From positions 124,001 through 188,000 of the IMG/VR virus record IMGVR_UViG_3300034073_003340: 64,000 bases of DNA. One strand, given 5' to 3'. Of the stretch, positions 1 through 38,033 are shown piece by piece. The number at the start of each line of letters is the position of its first letter. Position 1 is the stretch's first letter. A program made the position numbers and the translations under genes. The notes under the pieces were generated by a model that was given only the letters and a program-made list of their open reading frames with translations, did not search any database and was not told where the DNA came from.

Positions 1-126
1 CTCGGTGCGTTGATCCGTAATCACCTCCTCAGGTATAAAGTATGGCAGGCTCCAGCAAAGCATTGTGCTTCAAGATGTGTCCGAAGACCTGCTTAGAATA
101 CAGGAGATCTTCGGACACGTCATTAT

Positions 127-1646
127 TCACCAACGCTCTTGGATCAGCATTCCTGAAAAGAATCGCTGCCAGATGCGTTCACTAATAAAGGGCATAATAG
201 GATGTATCATGGGCAGAATCATTCGCAAACCTTCCAAGAGAGTCAAGAGAGCTTCGCGATCCCCCGCAAAGATTCGTTCCTTGATATCTTCCATGTAACC
301 GCTACAGAAGTCTTCGAACAAGATCCTATGACATTCTAAGGCAGCTTTGCTGTATTGGTAGTCCTTGTAGAGCTCTTTGAGATGCGTCTGTCGCGCTCTC
401 AGAAGCTCTATGAGCGCGATGTCGCGTTCATGCTTACTCGGATGCTGCGAAGGTTGCCCAATACGCTCCAAATGAATCTGAGCGAACTTAGCAGCATTCC
501 AAAGCTTGGTAGACATTCTTTTGCCAGCTTGGAACTTTTCATCCCATATTTTCATGTCCAGGCCCGGCTGGGTAGCTTCTGCCAACGCAAATCGCATGGC
601 ATCACAACCATACTGGTCAATGATCGTCAGAGGATCAATCCCGTTGCCAAGACTCTTGGACATCTTGCGACCCTGCTTATCCCGCATGATACCATGGAGG
701 TAGATGGTCTTGAATGGCATCTCACCCGTGAGCAAGAGTCCCATCATCAACATTCTGGCACACCAGAAGAACAAGATATCGTCGGCAGTCTCAATCATTT
801 CAGCGGGGTAGAATTTCCGCAGGTCTGGTGTGTCATTGGGCCAACCAAGAGTTGCGAAGGGCCAAAGAGCAGAGGAAAACCAAGTGTCTAGACAGCCTGC
901 TTCGCGTTGGAACCCTTTGGGTCCCTCTTGGCCAATTTGGATCTCTTCTCCCTGCCTCCAGATCGGCAACTTATGACCCCAGCGGATCTGCCTACTAATA
1001 CACCATGGTTCAATATTATTGAGAAAGTGGCGAAGAGTCTTGGCTTCGCTGGCTGGGCGAATTTCCAACTCGTCCTCATCCATTCTATCCAACAACTGCT
1101 TGGCTAGGTCGCGCATGTCTAGATACCATTGATCACCTTGCCTGTAGAGCATTCCTGCCCTATGGCACTTCTCAAGGGCCGTTGTGACCGCTCTTGAATA
1201 GTCCTCATCTAGAGTAAAGGTATAGCGGGACCAATCACATGAAGCGCCTGTTCTACGGATCTGTTGATTGATCTCTCCGCTAAGATTGGCTTTGTATGTT
1301 TCCGCGAAGTCATCAAAGGCAGGACCCATGGGATCCAATCCCTGATCCAACATAAGCTGGTCGAGTTTGTCCTGCGTTGCTAGTCCTGCGTGATCAGTGC
1401 CGGGAAGCCACAAAGCGGCCTTTCCCTGGGAGCGGGCAAAGCGAATAGAGATGTCTTGGAGCGTTGTGAACAACGCATGACCCATATGAAGTTTGCCCGT
1501 GATATTGGGCGGGGGCATGGGGATGAAATAGGGATCATCGCCCTTGGGTCTAAAGGCCCCGACAGTTTCCCACGCGCTGTAGAGCTCTTGCTCTTCAGTG
1601 TTGTGGTCGAAACGCTTGGTTAGTTGCTGACGTCCAACGTGGTCAT
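127..1646 (-). CDS. valS: Minimal valyl-tRNA synthetase (no CP1 editing domain, no C-terminal coiled coil); 5' end frameshifted
   Basis: PPPNITG-HMGH (HIGH), GTDHAG, WCISRQ, DTWFSS and KMSKS motifs in ORF 127..1518. ValRS-like N-terminus (RFDHNTEEQELYSAWETVGAF) continues in frame upstream, but the SD-linked ATG at 1646 is in another frame. Confidence 0.9.
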
Positions 1647-1673
1647 TTTGTTATCCTCCAAATAATCGTACGA

Positions 1674-1681
1674 TATTTATA
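1674..1681 (-). promoter_or_regulatory. T4-type late promoter TATAAATA upstream of valS
   Basis: Exact TATAAATA about 15 nt upstream of GGAGG SD. Confidence 0.6.
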
Positions 1682-2853: not shown

Positions 2854-3162
2854 TTAAATCACCCGGATTTCACACTGGCCCTTGCCAATTGGTGAATTAC
2901 CATTGGTAAAAACAGCTACTTCGTAGCCTTCACATTCCACTGAACTGGCAAACTTGTGAAAATCTTCTACCTTGGATTCTGGGATGATCCAGTTGGCTGC
3001 TTTCTTACCGTTATTGACAGCAATCATATAACCAGCATAGGTGAGCTCTGGAAATTGAGCAAACAGGAGTTCTCCCGTTCGACGCTCACTTGTCTTGAGC
3101 TCTTCGCGGGTTGGGCCCTTGGTCTTGTTAATCAGGAGAACTCTGTTCATTTTATTCCTCAA
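2854..3162 (-). CDS. Hypothetical protein
   Basis: ORF overlapping polB stop. Confidence 0.6.
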   Translation of the reverse strand: MRNKMNRVLLINKTKGPTREELKTSERRTGELLFAQFPELTYAGYMIAVNNGKKAANWIIPESKVEDFHKFASSVECEGYEVAVFTNGNSPIGKGQCEIRVI

Positions 3163-6146
3163 AAGCTGAATAGATCATTGAAAGTGGTGTCTTCTCGAGT
3201 GGCACTTAAATCCCACTTCAACACACCTATAAGATTCGAGACCTTTTTATCAATAATTGTTTCTTCCATCAGCTCATTATCAAAAGGCAGTTCCTTATAC
3301 CACTGAGGTAGATGCGGTTCATCAAAGGGATAGGCAACGCTATCCATCTTCAGAGGATTGGGCTTGAGCTTACAAACGATAACCTTCTGTCCGTCAGTAA
3401 TCTCCATGCTGAATCTGTCACCATACATTTCTCGCAAGGTATTCCAGTTCATTGCTGCGCGAACATGACCAGGGACCATGACCTTTTCCTTGGTCCCACT
3501 CTTCATGATATCCTTGCCATCGCCTTCTTGAATACGACTCATATAACCTGTGATACCATTGACCTTCTTTGGTGTTCCCTTGAGCCAGCCGTCTAGTGCC
3601 CTGAATTCCACTCGGAAATCTTTGATCATCTGGATGATTGTTTCCTTGGTACCACCATCCAACAAAGTTGTAATGATCTTTTCCAAGAATTCCTGCATCA
3701 TCTTTGGAGTGTCAGCGCGCTTGAGATCCAAACCAACTGCTTTGACCTTACCTGGCTTACCGTTAACATCTAGGCGGACGTTATCCTTGTCATACATCAA
3801 AAGAGCATAACGTTTCTTGGTGATAAACAAGCCACGACTCGCGATGAGCTCTCGACCTGCTTTGATAATTGCCCCTCTCTCAAGACCAGTATTGAACGCC
3901 ATATCCATGAATGGAGGAAAGCTTTCATTTACCGCTTCACCAATGCCATCATAAAGTTCGACCATTCGGTCTCGGTTTTGGAGCATTGGTGCCAGCTCAG
4001 GATCCGCTTCCAACATATCAACTGCGGTGAAATAAACCGAGTCAGTATCGTTGTAGAGGATCGCATCACCACGGACGTCGTAAACCCCTGTGATGATTTC
4101 ATTGGTCTTGCTGCTCATGTGTTTGGTAATTGAGCGACCCGACAGTGTAACTGACTGACCAATACGCGCATCGTAAAATCTACAACCTTCGTTGAGCAAA
4201 GCACCATAAAGAGAGTTCAGAAGAATTTTACGCGCTTGCTGTCGCTGGTTCCAAAATACTTCATGGCTTTTGGCTTCTTTTACAAAATCCGGTTCAATGA
4301 AGATACGGTCATCTTCAATACGGATAGCCTTGTCAGCAACTAGAAAATCAATCGCATCTTTGTCTCCTGATTTGATGAAATCAGGCAAATTAGCAAGATC
4401 TGCGCTATTTCTACCAGGCATGGCCCCAGTGGAAAACTTTTCCCAGTCGACCTTGAATCCTTTTACTTGAGCCGCAGCTTCAGAGAATACAGTTTCTTTG
4501 AACTGCATCTGCTTTCTCTGGGAATACCACTTGCCCAAGAGACCAGGAATAACTGCTTCTACGTCAGTTCGGAAGATTGTTCCGTTGGCAGTGATACAAT
4601 ATGGATTACCCTGAAGAAAGATGTATTCGTAGAGTTGTTCACCCGTGACTTCAATGCTCTGACCTTCTTCAAAGTCAACAACCATTGATTCCTGACTCTT
4701 GGTAGCAACCATGTCATACTCAAGGGTCGCAAATAGTCCTTCCCAACATTCAGGTCCGGGAATACCCTTGGCAAGTCTGGAGTCAATCAAAGCATTAGTG
4801 CGGTCCAGTCTTATCTGGCCCACCAGGGTCTCAGGACCCATGTTGAGGGCTCTCAGGGCAGATGGATACAGCGAGTTGATATCGCAACACGCGATTTCTC
4901 TATGGATGCCAATTTTCGGCTTAGCAACATACGCACCAACCACTGGTCGCTTTTCACCAGTATTCCTGAAAGGACGCGGACCATCATCTTCCTCATTCCA
5001 ATCATCCTCGTCATCATCCATATTGACGTCAAAGTCTGGACGTTTGCGATTAGGAACACACATACCACGCTGATGTGCTTCGTTGATGATTGCTTGCTCA
5101 ATTAGAGCAACTGATCCCATGGTTGTGGGCAGAAGAACGGTATTAGTATGGGCAATCTGGTTTGCTAGTTCGATAAAACGCTTTTTGGCGTCAATCTTCT
5201 GTAGGAGCGCAGTATCCTGGCGGTTATATTCCAGGAACTTACGAAAGTCTCGTTTGTAGAGGTTATCCAGAGTTCCGCTATATGGTGTCTTGTTTTCACC
5301 TACCTCAATTTCACCCACATAATCAAGTCGATAGCTGTGGAGTTCCTGTGGATTGTGCTTTTTGTAGAGTTCCAGATAGTCTAGATGAATACGTCCAATT
5401 AGCTCGTAAGTTTCCTGTTCCTTCTTGAACTGGATATACTTCTTGCGCTTGGGACGCTGGTTCCACAAACAAAGTTTCTTGGTATAATCCTTACCCATGA
5501 GCCGCTCAATACGGTTCACCACATAGGGAATATCGAAACCTTTGCTGTTCCAACCTGAGAGGACGTCGCAGTCCTCAATCAAGTCCAGGAACATAGTGAG
5601 GAGTTCAACCTCATCGTTACACAGATAAGTGTTGGGAAGACTTCTGCAGATCTCGTCAGCAGCTTCCCAAGTGAGGTGGTCCTTGTCGACCACAGGCAAG
5701 TTAGGCTTCAAACATACCGTGTAAAGTGTATCATCACTGGTACGATGGACTGAGATAGCCGTAATGGCACTGAATGGATCCCATGGACTCGCAAAACCTC
5801 GCTGTGGATCAAAGTCCACCTCAATATCGAAAAATCCAATATTCAGAACGGGAGATTCTACACCGAGGTAATTTTCTTCCAGACAGCGAAAAACAGGATT
5901 GATATCGCTTTCATAGGTGCGACGACCGCTTTGAAGCTTCAACTCACGCTGGAACGCTTTATTAGAGGTAAAGCTACTTTTGGATACAGGGCGACCCCAC
6001 ATATCCTTGAAACGACCACCACGAGCATCTTCATAATAGAACACATAGTTGGCGGGCAGAGATTTGAAAATTCTCTGACCATTAACGCGCTCTACGATAA
6101 GAATCTCATCCTTTTCTTTGTCATGCAGGGCATCAACGTAGGACAT
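3159..6146 (-). CDS. Family B DNA polymerase (gp43-like) with 3'-5' exonuclease
   Basis: FDIEV, WNSKGFD, YNRQD exo motifs; DINSLYPS, KILLNSLYG, YNDTDS, KKRY polymerase motifs; clamp-binding-like C-terminus NDLFSF. Confidence 0.97.
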   Translation of the reverse strand: MSYVDALHDKEKDEILIVERVNGQRIFKSLPANYVFYYEDARGGRFKDMWGRPVSKSSFTSNKAFQRELKLQSGRRTYESDINPVFRCLEENYLGVESPVLNIGFFDIEVDFDPQRGFASPWDPFSAITAISVHRTSDDTLYTVCLKPNLPVVDKDHLTWEAADEICRSLPNTYLCNDEVELLTMFLDLIEDCDVLSGWNSKGFDIPYVVNRIERLMGKDYTKKLCLWNQRPKRKKYIQFKKEQETYELIGRIHLDYLELYKKHNPQELHSYRLDYVGEIEVGENKTPYSGTLDNLYKRDFRKFLEYNRQDTALLQKIDAKKRFIELANQIAHTNTVLLPTTMGSVALIEQAIINEAHQRGMCVPNRKRPDFDVNMDDDEDDWNEEDDGPRPFRNTGEKRPVVGAYVAKPKIGIHREIACCDINSLYPSALRALNMGPETLVGQIRLDRTNALIDSRLAKGIPGPECWEGLFATLEYDMVATKSQESMVVDFEEGQSIEVTGEQLYEYIFLQGNPYCITANGTIFRTDVEAVIPGLLGKWYSQRKQMQFKETVFSEAAAQVKGFKVDWEKFSTGAMPGRNSADLANLPDFIKSGDKDAIDFLVADKAIRIEDDRIFIEPDFVKEAKSHEVFWNQRQQARKILLNSLYGALLNEGCRFYDARIGQSVTLSGRSITKHMSSKTNEIITGVYDVRGDAILYNDTDSVYFTAVDMLEADPELAPMLQNRDRMVELYDGIGEAVNESFPPFMDMAFNTGLERGAIIKAGRELIASRGLFITKKRYALLMYDKDNVRLDVNGKPGKVKAVGLDLKRADTPKMMQEFLEKIITTLLDGGTKETIIQMIKDFRVEFRALDGWLKGTPKKVNGITGYMSRIQEGDGKDIMKSGTKEKVMVPGHVRAAMNWNTLREMYGDRFSMEITDGQKVIVCKLKPNPLKMDSVAYPFDEPHLPQWYKELPFDNELMEETIIDKKVSNLIGVLKWDLSATREDTTFNDLFSF

Positions 6147-36669: not shown

Positions 36670-36754
36670 GCGCCTATGGTGGAATTGGTAGACACATCAG
36701 ATTTAGGTTCTGACGTCGAAAGGTGTGGGGGTTCGAGTCCCTCTAGGCGCACCA
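36670..36754 (+). tRNA. tRNA-Leu(TAG)
   Basis: GCGCCTA/TAGGCGC acceptor, TCAGA-TTTAGGT-TCTGA anticodon arm, long variable arm, TTCGA, CCA. Confidence 0.95.
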
Positions 36755-36794
36755 AAACAAATAGATGGACACCAAGCCTAGAACTATTTGTTTT

Positions 36795-36920
36795 GATTGC
36801 TGTAGGCGGGTTAAGACCCAAGCAAAAAGCCTAGCTGTTCATGGTAGCGGGTGGAGGATTCAGTGAACGTGACTGAGTCTATAGTGTTATGAACTCTCTT
36901 CTAGAGACCTACAGTAGATC
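36795..36920 (+). ncRNA. Candidate structured RNA in tRNA cluster
   Basis: Nested complementary segments (see findings). Confidence 0.35.
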
Positions 36921-36938
36921 GAACAATGGAGAGTTGTT

Positions 36939-37073
36939 ATGATCACCGAAATTCTTATAAAATCGTTCTTTGGGCTGTTAATGCTCGGTATGATCTATAG
37001 CGGGTGGAAACAGATTCCACCGGAAAGCCCTGAAATGCTAGCAGCTCGCAAGCGTTACGGAAAGTCCAAGTAA
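36939..37073 (+). CDS. 44-aa membrane peptide
   Basis: MITEILIKSFFGLLMLGMIYSGWK...; GGAG SD. Confidence 0.55.
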   Translation: MITEILIKSFFGLLMLGMIYSGWKQIPPESPEMLAARKRYGKSK

Positions 37074-37078
37074 ACACT

Positions 37079-37154
37079 GGCTCCTTAGGCTAACTGGAAA
37101 AACCGGAGACCTCCTAAGTCTCATTTACAGGTTCGAGTCCTGTAGGGGTCACCA
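37079..37154 (+). tRNA. tRNA-Arg(CCT)
   Basis: GAGAC-CTCCTAA-GTCTC anticodon arm, ACAGG-TTCGAGT-CCTGT, CCA. Confidence 0.9.
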
Positions 37155-37159
37155 TTACC

Positions 37160-37909
37160 ATGTTCAAATTCCAAACCAACAAATTCCCTCATCAACGATC
37201 TTTCATAGAAAAGATCCTGAGGAGATTCTATCTACCTTCTCCCAAGTATTACAAATTCAGATTGCTTTCGAGCAACAATCGCTATGAAATCAAGATAAAG
37301 AAAAAGTTCCCTATCAGGTGGTTTTTTTGGGAAACCATTCCTGATATCTGGCATAGGATGGTAGTGGAATCTTACAGATCAGTTGAAGATTTTATTCGTT
37401 ATAGAACCAAACATCGATATCATTTGGTCGATACCGGTTTGAAACCCGGTTACTACGACACTGATACCCGTATGCTCCATTCTTGTTTTAATCTATTTGT
37501 TGATTATGTGGAAATAGAACTTGCCGCGATGAACCTATCGCACGAGGCTGATGACGGAACCAGTAAGACCTTCTATGAAACCTGGTTTCAATTTAAAAGA
37601 AAAAGAATTCGAGATGCCAGTCAAGGTATTGCCTTACTGGATCGGGAAATACAGCAAAATAACTATCCGGGTTCGAGAAACCAGTTATTTGTGGAGAAAA
37701 AGTTCTTATATACTTGGTGGAAGGTTTATCGACCATTGCGGTCTGATCCCTATACAGATCAGTTGATCTGGGACGTAAATCCTAAAACTGGTGAGGCTAT
37801 CTTTAAAGATAGATATGCGATAGTTGATAACCTGGCCGATTTCTATGAGGCAGAAGATACTGAAATGCTGGTACGTCTCATGAACGTGAGATCAAGTCTT
37901 TGGACATAA
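37160..37909 (+). CDS. Hypothetical protein
   Basis: 249-aa ORF between tRNAs. Confidence 0.65.
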   Translation: MFKFQTNKFPHQRSFIEKILRRFYLPSPKYYKFRLLSSNNRYEIKIKKKFPIRWFFWETIPDIWHRMVVESYRSVEDFIRYRTKHRYHLVDTGLKPGYYDTDTRMLHSCFNLFVDYVEIELAAMNLSHEADDGTSKTFYETWFQFKRKRIRDASQGIALLDREIQQNNYPGSRNQLFVEKKFLYTWWKVYRPLRSDPYTDQLIWDVNPKTGEAIFKDRYAIVDNLADFYEAEDTEMLVRLMNVRSSLWT

Positions 37910-37956
37910 AGTTCTTGCTCTTTATATAAAATGCTTGTATAAATAGAGCATAACAA

Positions 37957-38033
37957 CGGGGTTTAGCGCAGCCTGGTAGCGCACCTGCTTTGGGAGCAGG
38001 GGGCCGTAGGTTCGAATCCTACAATCCCGACCA
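37957..38033 (+). tRNA. tRNA-Pro(TGG)
   Basis: CCTGC-TTTGGGA-GCAGG anticodon arm, canonical D/T arms, CCA; TATAAATA at 37938-37945. Confidence 0.97.

Follow-up and report, generated by a model that had tools for sequence, protein, structure and literature searches.

The minus-strand gene at one end of the analysed DNA encodes a conserved, half-size valyl-tRNA synthetase (ValRS) of a 436-kb phage, which lacks the CP1 proofreading domain and the C-terminal tRNA-holding domains, and which follows a tiny leader ORF carrying a Val codon that is invariant in all 25 loci compared. The analysed DNA, hereafter the window, is a stretch of 64,000 nucleotides from a 435,856-bp virus record that has direct terminal repeats and is rated complete. 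The genes next to the synthetase are phage replication genes, for example that of a 995-aa family B polymerase. A sequence-only reading had described the ORF of 463 aa that begins at the first canonical start as a minimal ValRS without CP1 and coiled coil, in which only QGD takes the place of the editing domain, the region after WCISRQ is contracted, HIGH and KMSKS are intact, and the protein ends after the anticodon-binding helices at about 500 aa instead of about 900. This anatomical observation is confirmed by our alignments, whereas the start that it assumed is not the biological N-terminus. Its reading of function, an error-prone ValRS, a bypass of host defence directed at tRNA or synthetases, or a repurposed adenylate enzyme, is partly supported, the first being the most economical reading, inferred from sequence and fold, and the others having no direct support. 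It also did not recognize that the gene belongs to a widespread phage family, or that the conserved N-terminus has no canonical start and sits behind a conserved leader ORF. The positions of all features are collected in Table 1, in which L numbers designate individual loci, L002 being that of a relative at 94% protein identity, and G000:C1 designates the phage genome.

Table 1. Positions of the synthetase gene, its leader and other features discussed in the text
Sequence	Positions	Strand	Feature
Window	127-1650	-	Open ValRS-like reading frame; homology to ValRS starts at the Leu codon at 1621-1623
Window	1651-1653	-	TAA, nearest upstream in-frame stop
Window	127-1518	-	ORF as delimited by the first canonical start (ATG, MPPPN...), 463 aa
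Window	127-129	-	TGA stop of the ValRS gene
Window	1519-1623	-	35 N-terminal codons (LTKRFDH...YFIP) homologous to ValRS residues 1-40, without ATG, GTG or TTG
Window	1620-1646	-	Leader ORF, MTTLDVSN, +1 frame relative to ValRS; ATG at 1644-1646, TAA at 1620-1622
Window	1629-1635	-	Conserved heptamer G|GAC GTC (X|XAN GUN), proposed -1 slip site with a Val codon in the A site
Window	1654-1659	-	Shine-Dalgarno (SD) sequence GGAGGA, 7 nt upstream of the leader ATG
Window	1504-1518	-	MPPPN
Window	1477-1488	-	HIGH motif (HMGH)
Window	1123-1149	-	LYRQGDQWY
Window	1132-1140	-	QGD turn in place of the CP1 insertion, between strands MLYR and QWYL
Window	988-1005	-	WCISRQ
Window	652-666	-	KMSKS motif
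Window	130-600	-	Anticodon-binding helix bundle
Window	484-507	-	KLWNAAKF, in the helix bundle
Window	169-204	-	HPIMPFISERIW, in the helix bundle
Window	60-126	-	Inverted repeat GTGTCCGAAGA...TCTTCGGACAC, just after the TGA stop
Window	1674-1681		TATAAATA
Window	3159-6146		Family B polymerase, 995 aa
Window	36670-38033		Three tRNA genes, Leu-UAG, Arg-CCU and Pro-UGG
G000:C1	100291-101640 (L013:1114-2463)	-	Cysteinyl-tRNA synthetase (CysRS), 449 aa
G000:C1	99130-99204		tRNA with anticodon CUA, outside the window
G000:C1	293258-293333		tRNA with anticodon CUA, outside the window
G000:C1	about 292,000-326,000	-	Cluster with most of the 59 tRNA genes
L002	5800-5880		GCTATAAGTA and hairpin upstream of the leader
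L003	2790-2870		GCTATAAGTA and hairpin upstream of the leader
L004	2925-2975		GCTATAAGTA and hairpin upstream of the leader
L006, L008			GCTATAAGTA and hairpin upstream of the leader
L002	7542-8363		GIY-YIG/NUMOD3 homing-endonuclease-like gene immediately downstream of the ValRS gene
L024 (NZ_JASNVZ010000001.1)	530367-537794		Locus with minimal ValRS and leader, Sphingomonas sp. 3-13AW

Profile searches place the protein with bacterial ValRS, as the NCBIfam profile PRK05729 scores 509.2 bits and TIGR00422 scores 456.9 bits, against 277 bits for archaeal valS, 218 for ileS and 103 for metG. All of these scores remain below the curated cut-offs (the equivalog cut-offs being 704 for PRK05729 and 612.1 for TIGR00422), and each match comes in two stretches that skip profile positions of about 170-350 and stop at about position 693 of 860. 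A phmmer search against the PDB aligns residues 3-162 with residues 5-169 of Thermus thermophilus ValRS (PDB identifier 1GAX), and residues of about 163-488 with about 350-694 of 862, with 37-45% identity over the shared parts, so that about 175-210 residues of CP1 are replaced by the three-residue turn and everything after the helix bundle is absent. A multiple alignment with the Salmonella ValRS of 951 aa shows a gap of about 209 columns between LIYR and DQWY, a smaller gap after IPAW (the insertion after WCISRQ..PIW is shortened), the lack of the enterobacterial insert after KMSKS, and about 165 missing C-terminal residues, the protein ending at the equivalent of T. thermophilus residue ~700 of 862 and Salmonella residue ~785 of 951. 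The anticodon-stem-contact domain and the coiled coil (about 160 aa) are thus lost. In contrast, HIGH, KMSKS, GTDHAG, WCISRQ and DTWFSS are intact, and the valine-pocket and amino-group-binding residues equivalent to T. thermophilus P41, P42, N44, D81, W456, I491 and W495, as reportedly listed by Fukai et al. 2000, are identical in the alignment to 1GAX and invariant or nearly so across 59 family members.

An AlphaFold2 model built on these 59 family members has a mean pLDDT of 94.9 and a pTM of 0.93, and in this predicted structure the strands MLYR and QWYL form a clean β-hairpin joined by QGD exactly where CP1 would leave and re-enter the Rossmann fold, while helices H361-488 align to residues 579-694 of 1GAX. 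A Foldseek search with the model puts 1GAX first, with a TM-score of 0.94 normalized to the phage protein and 0.55 normalized to the target, followed by IleRS, the leucyl-tRNA synthetase of Mycoplasma mobile (PDB identifier 3ZIU) and MetRS. The M. mobile LeuRS, a class Ia enzyme that has lost the CP1 editing domain in nature, is the nearest precedent for natural CP1 loss (query-normalized TM-score of 0.79), and a review links Mycoplasma editing defects to mistranslation (PMC7373986). However, it differs in amino-acid specificity, is a cellular housekeeping enzyme of a reduced parasite rather than a phage accessory gene, retains its C-terminal tRNA-binding domain, and is not known to have a leader ORF. 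The MetRS core (for example, PDB identifiers 7WPT and 1A8H) has the same overall size and domain order, that is, Rossmann fold, small CP, SC fold and helix bundle (TM-scores of 0.78 and 0.81 in the two normalizations), but the sequence, pocket and profile scores of the phage protein are ValRS-like (509 bits against 103), and MetRS keeps a CP of roughly 100 residues with zinc knuckles, whereas the link here is three residues.

Decay into a pseudogene, or an alignment showing CP1 to be present, had been named beforehand as outcomes that would overturn the observation, and neither was obtained. The absence of a canonical start for the N-terminus, the apparent offset of one nucleotide after the SD and ATG, and the loss of half of the normal length could suggest a truncated and frameshifted valS fragment or an assembly artefact. 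However, dN/dS for the whole gene against five close relatives is 0.07-0.11, the same architecture and frame offset occur in 25 loci from unrelated samples, contigs of four sequencing runs show no indel, the relatives do not show random stops or indels, and the fold is predicted with high confidence. We therefore consider this possibility effectively refuted.

The gene is a member of a large and mostly viral family. A word-indexed search gave more than 100 proteins of 430-520 aa at 42-94% identity with the same Pfam content, of which many sit on contigs of 240-580 kb and nine are in IMG/VR huge-phage records, and all members share the same CP1 junction. The cultured Stenotrophomonas phages RAS14 and CM1 (319 kb) carry a 449-aa version annotated as valyl-tRNA synthetase, and the nearest ESM Atlas cluster (444 aa, 82 members) is 97% viral. 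Other Atlas clusters of 'putative valine-tRNA ligase' of about 732-738 aa, mostly from Minisyncoccota (CPR bacteria), score close to the phage protein and may represent a second, partial reduction of ValRS. Some family members (P0152, 933 aa; P0127, 742 aa; P0117, 554 aa) carry the CP1-less core together with long C-terminal extensions. In a maximum-likelihood tree of 38 minimal and 37 full-length sequences, 36 of the 37 full-length ValRS lie on one side of a branch with SH-aLRT support of 100 and all minimal forms on the other; the single exception, P0152, is a minimal core with a C-terminal extension, judging from its match coordinates. Together with the much higher score to bacterial than to archaeal valS, this points to one ancestral reduction of a bacterial-type ValRS, although the tree is unrooted and this remains an inference. 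Among 185,579 species genomes, family-specific peptides found a single hit, on a 581-kb contig of an isolate assembly of Sphingomonas sp. 3-13AW (L024), which encodes a minimal ValRS behind the same leader (MTTLDVA, stop TAG), the protein being called only 'class I tRNA ligase family protein' by PGAP. A metagenome scan with the family alignment returned almost only ordinary full-length ValRS, because the chosen peptides were generic, and yielded one extra minimal locus (L025). In the 94%-identical relative a GIY-YIG/NUMOD3 homing-endonuclease-like gene immediately follows the ValRS gene, whereas other relatives have an Ogg-HhH gene in that position. Literature searches found no description of a CP1-less phage ValRS or of the leader described below.

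The genomic context is consistent with a role in tRNA charging. The genome encodes 59 tRNAs, covering nearly all amino acids, of which three are tRNA-Val (two UAC, one GAC) with A35, C36, A73 and an encoded CCA. ARAGORN also calls two tRNAs with anticodon CUA, which look like amber suppressors, but TAG ends only 7 of 118 ORFs of 300 aa or more, and crude ORF statistics gave no sign of a non-standard code, so no alternative code is claimed. The phage also encodes a full-length CysRS, which scores 460 bits against a TIGR00435 cut-off of 340 and has an ordinary ATG start with no leader of the ValRS type. Huge phages carry synthetases that may charge their own tRNAs (PMC7162821). ValRS clears Thr-tRNA-Val in CP1 and relies mainly on post-transfer editing (PMC7373986), but no CP1-like segment was found elsewhere in the genome with the valS profile, for which the controls hit in 14 of 14 genomes, or with Salmonella CP1 as a query, a search that had no positive control. 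Similarly, no YbaK/ProX-type deacylase was found in a search whose control hit in 10 of 14 genomes.

Based on these observations, we hypothesize with moderate confidence that the gene encodes a working but stripped-down ValRS that keeps the Rossmann catalytic core, the SC fold and the anticodon-binding helix bundle, in a layout resembling MetRS that derives from a bacterial-type ValRS by one ancestral excision of CP1 and loss of the C-terminal tRNA-elbow domains. The analysis itself establishes the ValRS-specific similarity, the conservation of the motifs and pocket residues, the confidently predicted fold, the purifying selection, the viral family with its common junction and its separation in the tree, the three tRNA-Val genes, and the recurrence of the leader described below. 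In contrast, valine activation, aminoacylation of tRNA-Val, the lack of editing activity and the control of expression by the leader are inferred from sequence and fold, and no sequencing run that contains the sequence is on record as RNA. The enzyme most likely activates valine and charges tRNA-Val, both the phage's own three and probably the host's, during infection, using anticodon and acceptor contacts only. As the valine pocket is unchanged, misactivation of threonine should persist at the usual low rate, and with no editor found in cis or encoded in trans by the phage, an editing-free ValRS is the most economical reading; errors would be tolerated during a short infection or cleared by the host's full-length enzyme, or accuracy would simply be lower. 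It should be noted that loss of the coiled coil and stem-contact domain may weaken tRNA binding, and that loss of the whole CP1 may disturb placement of the 3' end.

An alternative is that the protein is a repurposed valine-adenylate enzyme that passes valine to something other than tRNA, or that it has a regulatory, non-catalytic role, for example as a tRNA-Val binding decoy or a shield against host tRNA-directed defence. The loss of the editing domain and of the domains that hold the tRNA elbow would be compatible with this, and class I synthetase paralogues with non-translational roles exist (PMC9437257), of which MshC appears among the weaker hits to the neighbouring CysRS. However, the anticodon-binding domain is retained (PF08264 is recorded for nearly all homologues, and the NKLWN-type Lys and Trp are invariant or nearly so), KMSKS is intact, the phage carries tRNA-Val genes, and the CP1-less M. 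mobile LeuRS, a fold match, charges tRNA. We consider this alternative unlikely, and neither the defence bypass nor the repurposed enzyme proposed by the sequence-only reading has direct support.

The 5' end of the gene is unexpected. The ValRS frame is open for 35 codons upstream of the first canonical ATG, and these codons align with residues 5-40 of the T. thermophilus enzyme and 1-40 of the Salmonella enzyme and include the first Rossmann strand (E31-35 of the model), which a start at that ATG would cut off just before HIGH. Their dN/dS is 0.08-0.30 in five of six comparisons and 0.86 in the comparison with L008, which rests on few changes. Instead of a start in this frame, an SD and ATG open the 8-codon leader, relative to which ValRS is in the -1 frame, and the leader stop overlaps the Leu codon that occupies the position of Escherichia coli Met1. 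A relative at 94% protein identity and another at 80% carry the same 45 nt of the leader unchanged, while their coding dS to the window is 0.56 and 1.5, respectively. An assembly error is ruled out, since the frame layout is identical in 24 other loci and the contigs of four runs show no indel.

Comparison of the 25 loci (49-94% identity, plus the distant RAS14 group) shows that every locus has an SD and a short ORF in the +1 frame, and that every leader contains X|XAN followed by a Val codon, with G|GAC in 16, G|GAA in 3, A|AAC in 4, A|AAA in 1 and C|CAA in 1. The third base of the invariant Val codon takes all four values (GTA 15, GTC 7, GTG 2, GTT 1), which shows that the leader frame is the frame under selection at that codon. 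The residue before Val is D, E, N, K or Q, and the first base of its codon always equals the preceding base, whereas the rest of the peptide is not conserved (MLDVSN, MWDVRS, MSPLNV, MKSLDV, MERCQVI and others). The ValRS frame is open from that point in all loci, including 30 extra codons in L107 and 12 in L136. A usable early start in the ValRS frame is present in only 9 of the 25 loci (GTG at -3 in six, ATG overlapping the leader stop in RAS14 and L106, and TTG in L004), and 13 loci, including the window, have no canonical start at all.

Two mechanisms of entry into the ValRS frame are candidates. In ordinary translational coupling, ribosomes finishing the leader would reinitiate at the overlapping codon or initiate at the GTG just upstream, and the window's version would then simply be a very weakly expressed or silenced copy. 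The leader stop overlaps the codon at the E. coli Met1 position in most loci, and the ATGA overlap in RAS14 and L106 is the signature of termination-reinitiation; the codon is TTG in L004 and CTG in L014, L019 and L105. However, it is CTA in 15 loci and TTA in two (L107 and L137), neither of which is a start, and in L135 and L136 the leader stop lies elsewhere, so that termination-reinitiation cannot serve the majority of loci. Coupling also does not explain the invariant Val codon or the X|X match, nor does it fit the 13 loci without a canonical start, in view of the purifying selection on the N-terminal codons and the whole gene, and we regard it as the less likely mechanism, though possible.

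Alternatively, ribosomes would load at the SD and ATG of the leader, and the P-site tRNA would slip by -1 from XAN to XXA while the A site waits at the Val codon; in the window's version such a -1 shift, of tRNA-Asp at G|GAC-GUC, would be the only route into the ValRS frame. This fits every locus and explains exactly the bases that are conserved, and it would make synthetase output rise when charged tRNA-Val is scarce, but it remains a tentative hypothesis. The motif allows 2 of 3 or 3 of 3 re-pairing of the P-site tRNA but is not a classical X_XXY_YYZ heptamer, re-pairing of Asp and Asn tRNAs (for example, tRNA-Asp on GGA) is imperfect, and the X|X covariation rests on only two or three independent changes. 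Single-sequence folds show no downstream hairpin conserved in position among the loci, and the initiating SD lies 12-19 nt upstream of the site. A +1 shift, a hop between matched codons (AAC..AAC, ACG..ACG) and a slip at the leader's stop codon all land in the wrong frame or lack re-pairing, stop-codon recoding as a way to reach an upstream start does not apply because the problem is one of frame offset, and mimicry of an anticodon arm by GAC in the leader was dropped because GAA, AAC, AAA and CAA variants exist. In carrying a short upstream coding element with the codon class that reports on the product's own activity, the leader resembles autoregulatory recoding and leader-peptide control of translation genes, such as the prfB +1 frameshift and the pheST leader peptide, but here the direction would be -1 at a sense ('hungry') codon, and Atkins et al. 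2016 state that no natural example is known of hungry-codon frameshifting producing a functional trans-frame protein (PMC5009743).

A T4-type late promoter is not supported, as TATAAATA is not enriched in the window (3 matches against 2.0 expected) and TATAAGTA, seen in relatives, is absent, and a sigma-70 and terminator scan was at background. Relatives carry a conserved GCTATAAGTA followed by a perfect hairpin of 8-11 bp just before the SD, the stem of which differs in sequence between genomes but stays complementary. The window lacks this element and has TATAAATA instead, whereas one sequencing run (X3) contains a co-occurring strain that switches to the hairpin type at 1664. The inverted repeat that follows the ValRS stop may be a terminator or an RNA-stability hairpin, although the consensus scan did not call it.

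ValRS is a textbook 'double-sieve' enzyme, the CP1 editing site of which is regarded as a universal part of the enzyme. A large, conserved phage lineage that removed CP1 cleanly, along with the tRNA-elbow domains, is a natural minimal ValRS, and can show how little of a class Ia synthetase is needed for specific charging, how much Val-to-Thr error a virus tolerates or off-loads onto the host enzyme, and whether such compact enzymes could serve in synthetic translation systems. While the enzyme itself is of a known type, its CP1-less architecture in phages appears not to have been described, and the leader, with an invariant Val codon in an overlapping mini-ORF in all copies compared and no canonical start for the conserved N-terminus in 13 of 25, is a directly testable candidate for recoding-based feedback between tRNA charging and synthetase synthesis, both questions being approachable at the bench in the cultured relatives RAS14 and CM1. 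If the leader is a sensor of Val-tRNA-Val supply, which we regard as possible but doubtful on present evidence, the phage would make its editing-free ValRS only when charged tRNA-Val runs short, and this would be the first natural case of hungry-codon frameshifting used to produce a functional protein, and a new kind of synthetase autoregulation.
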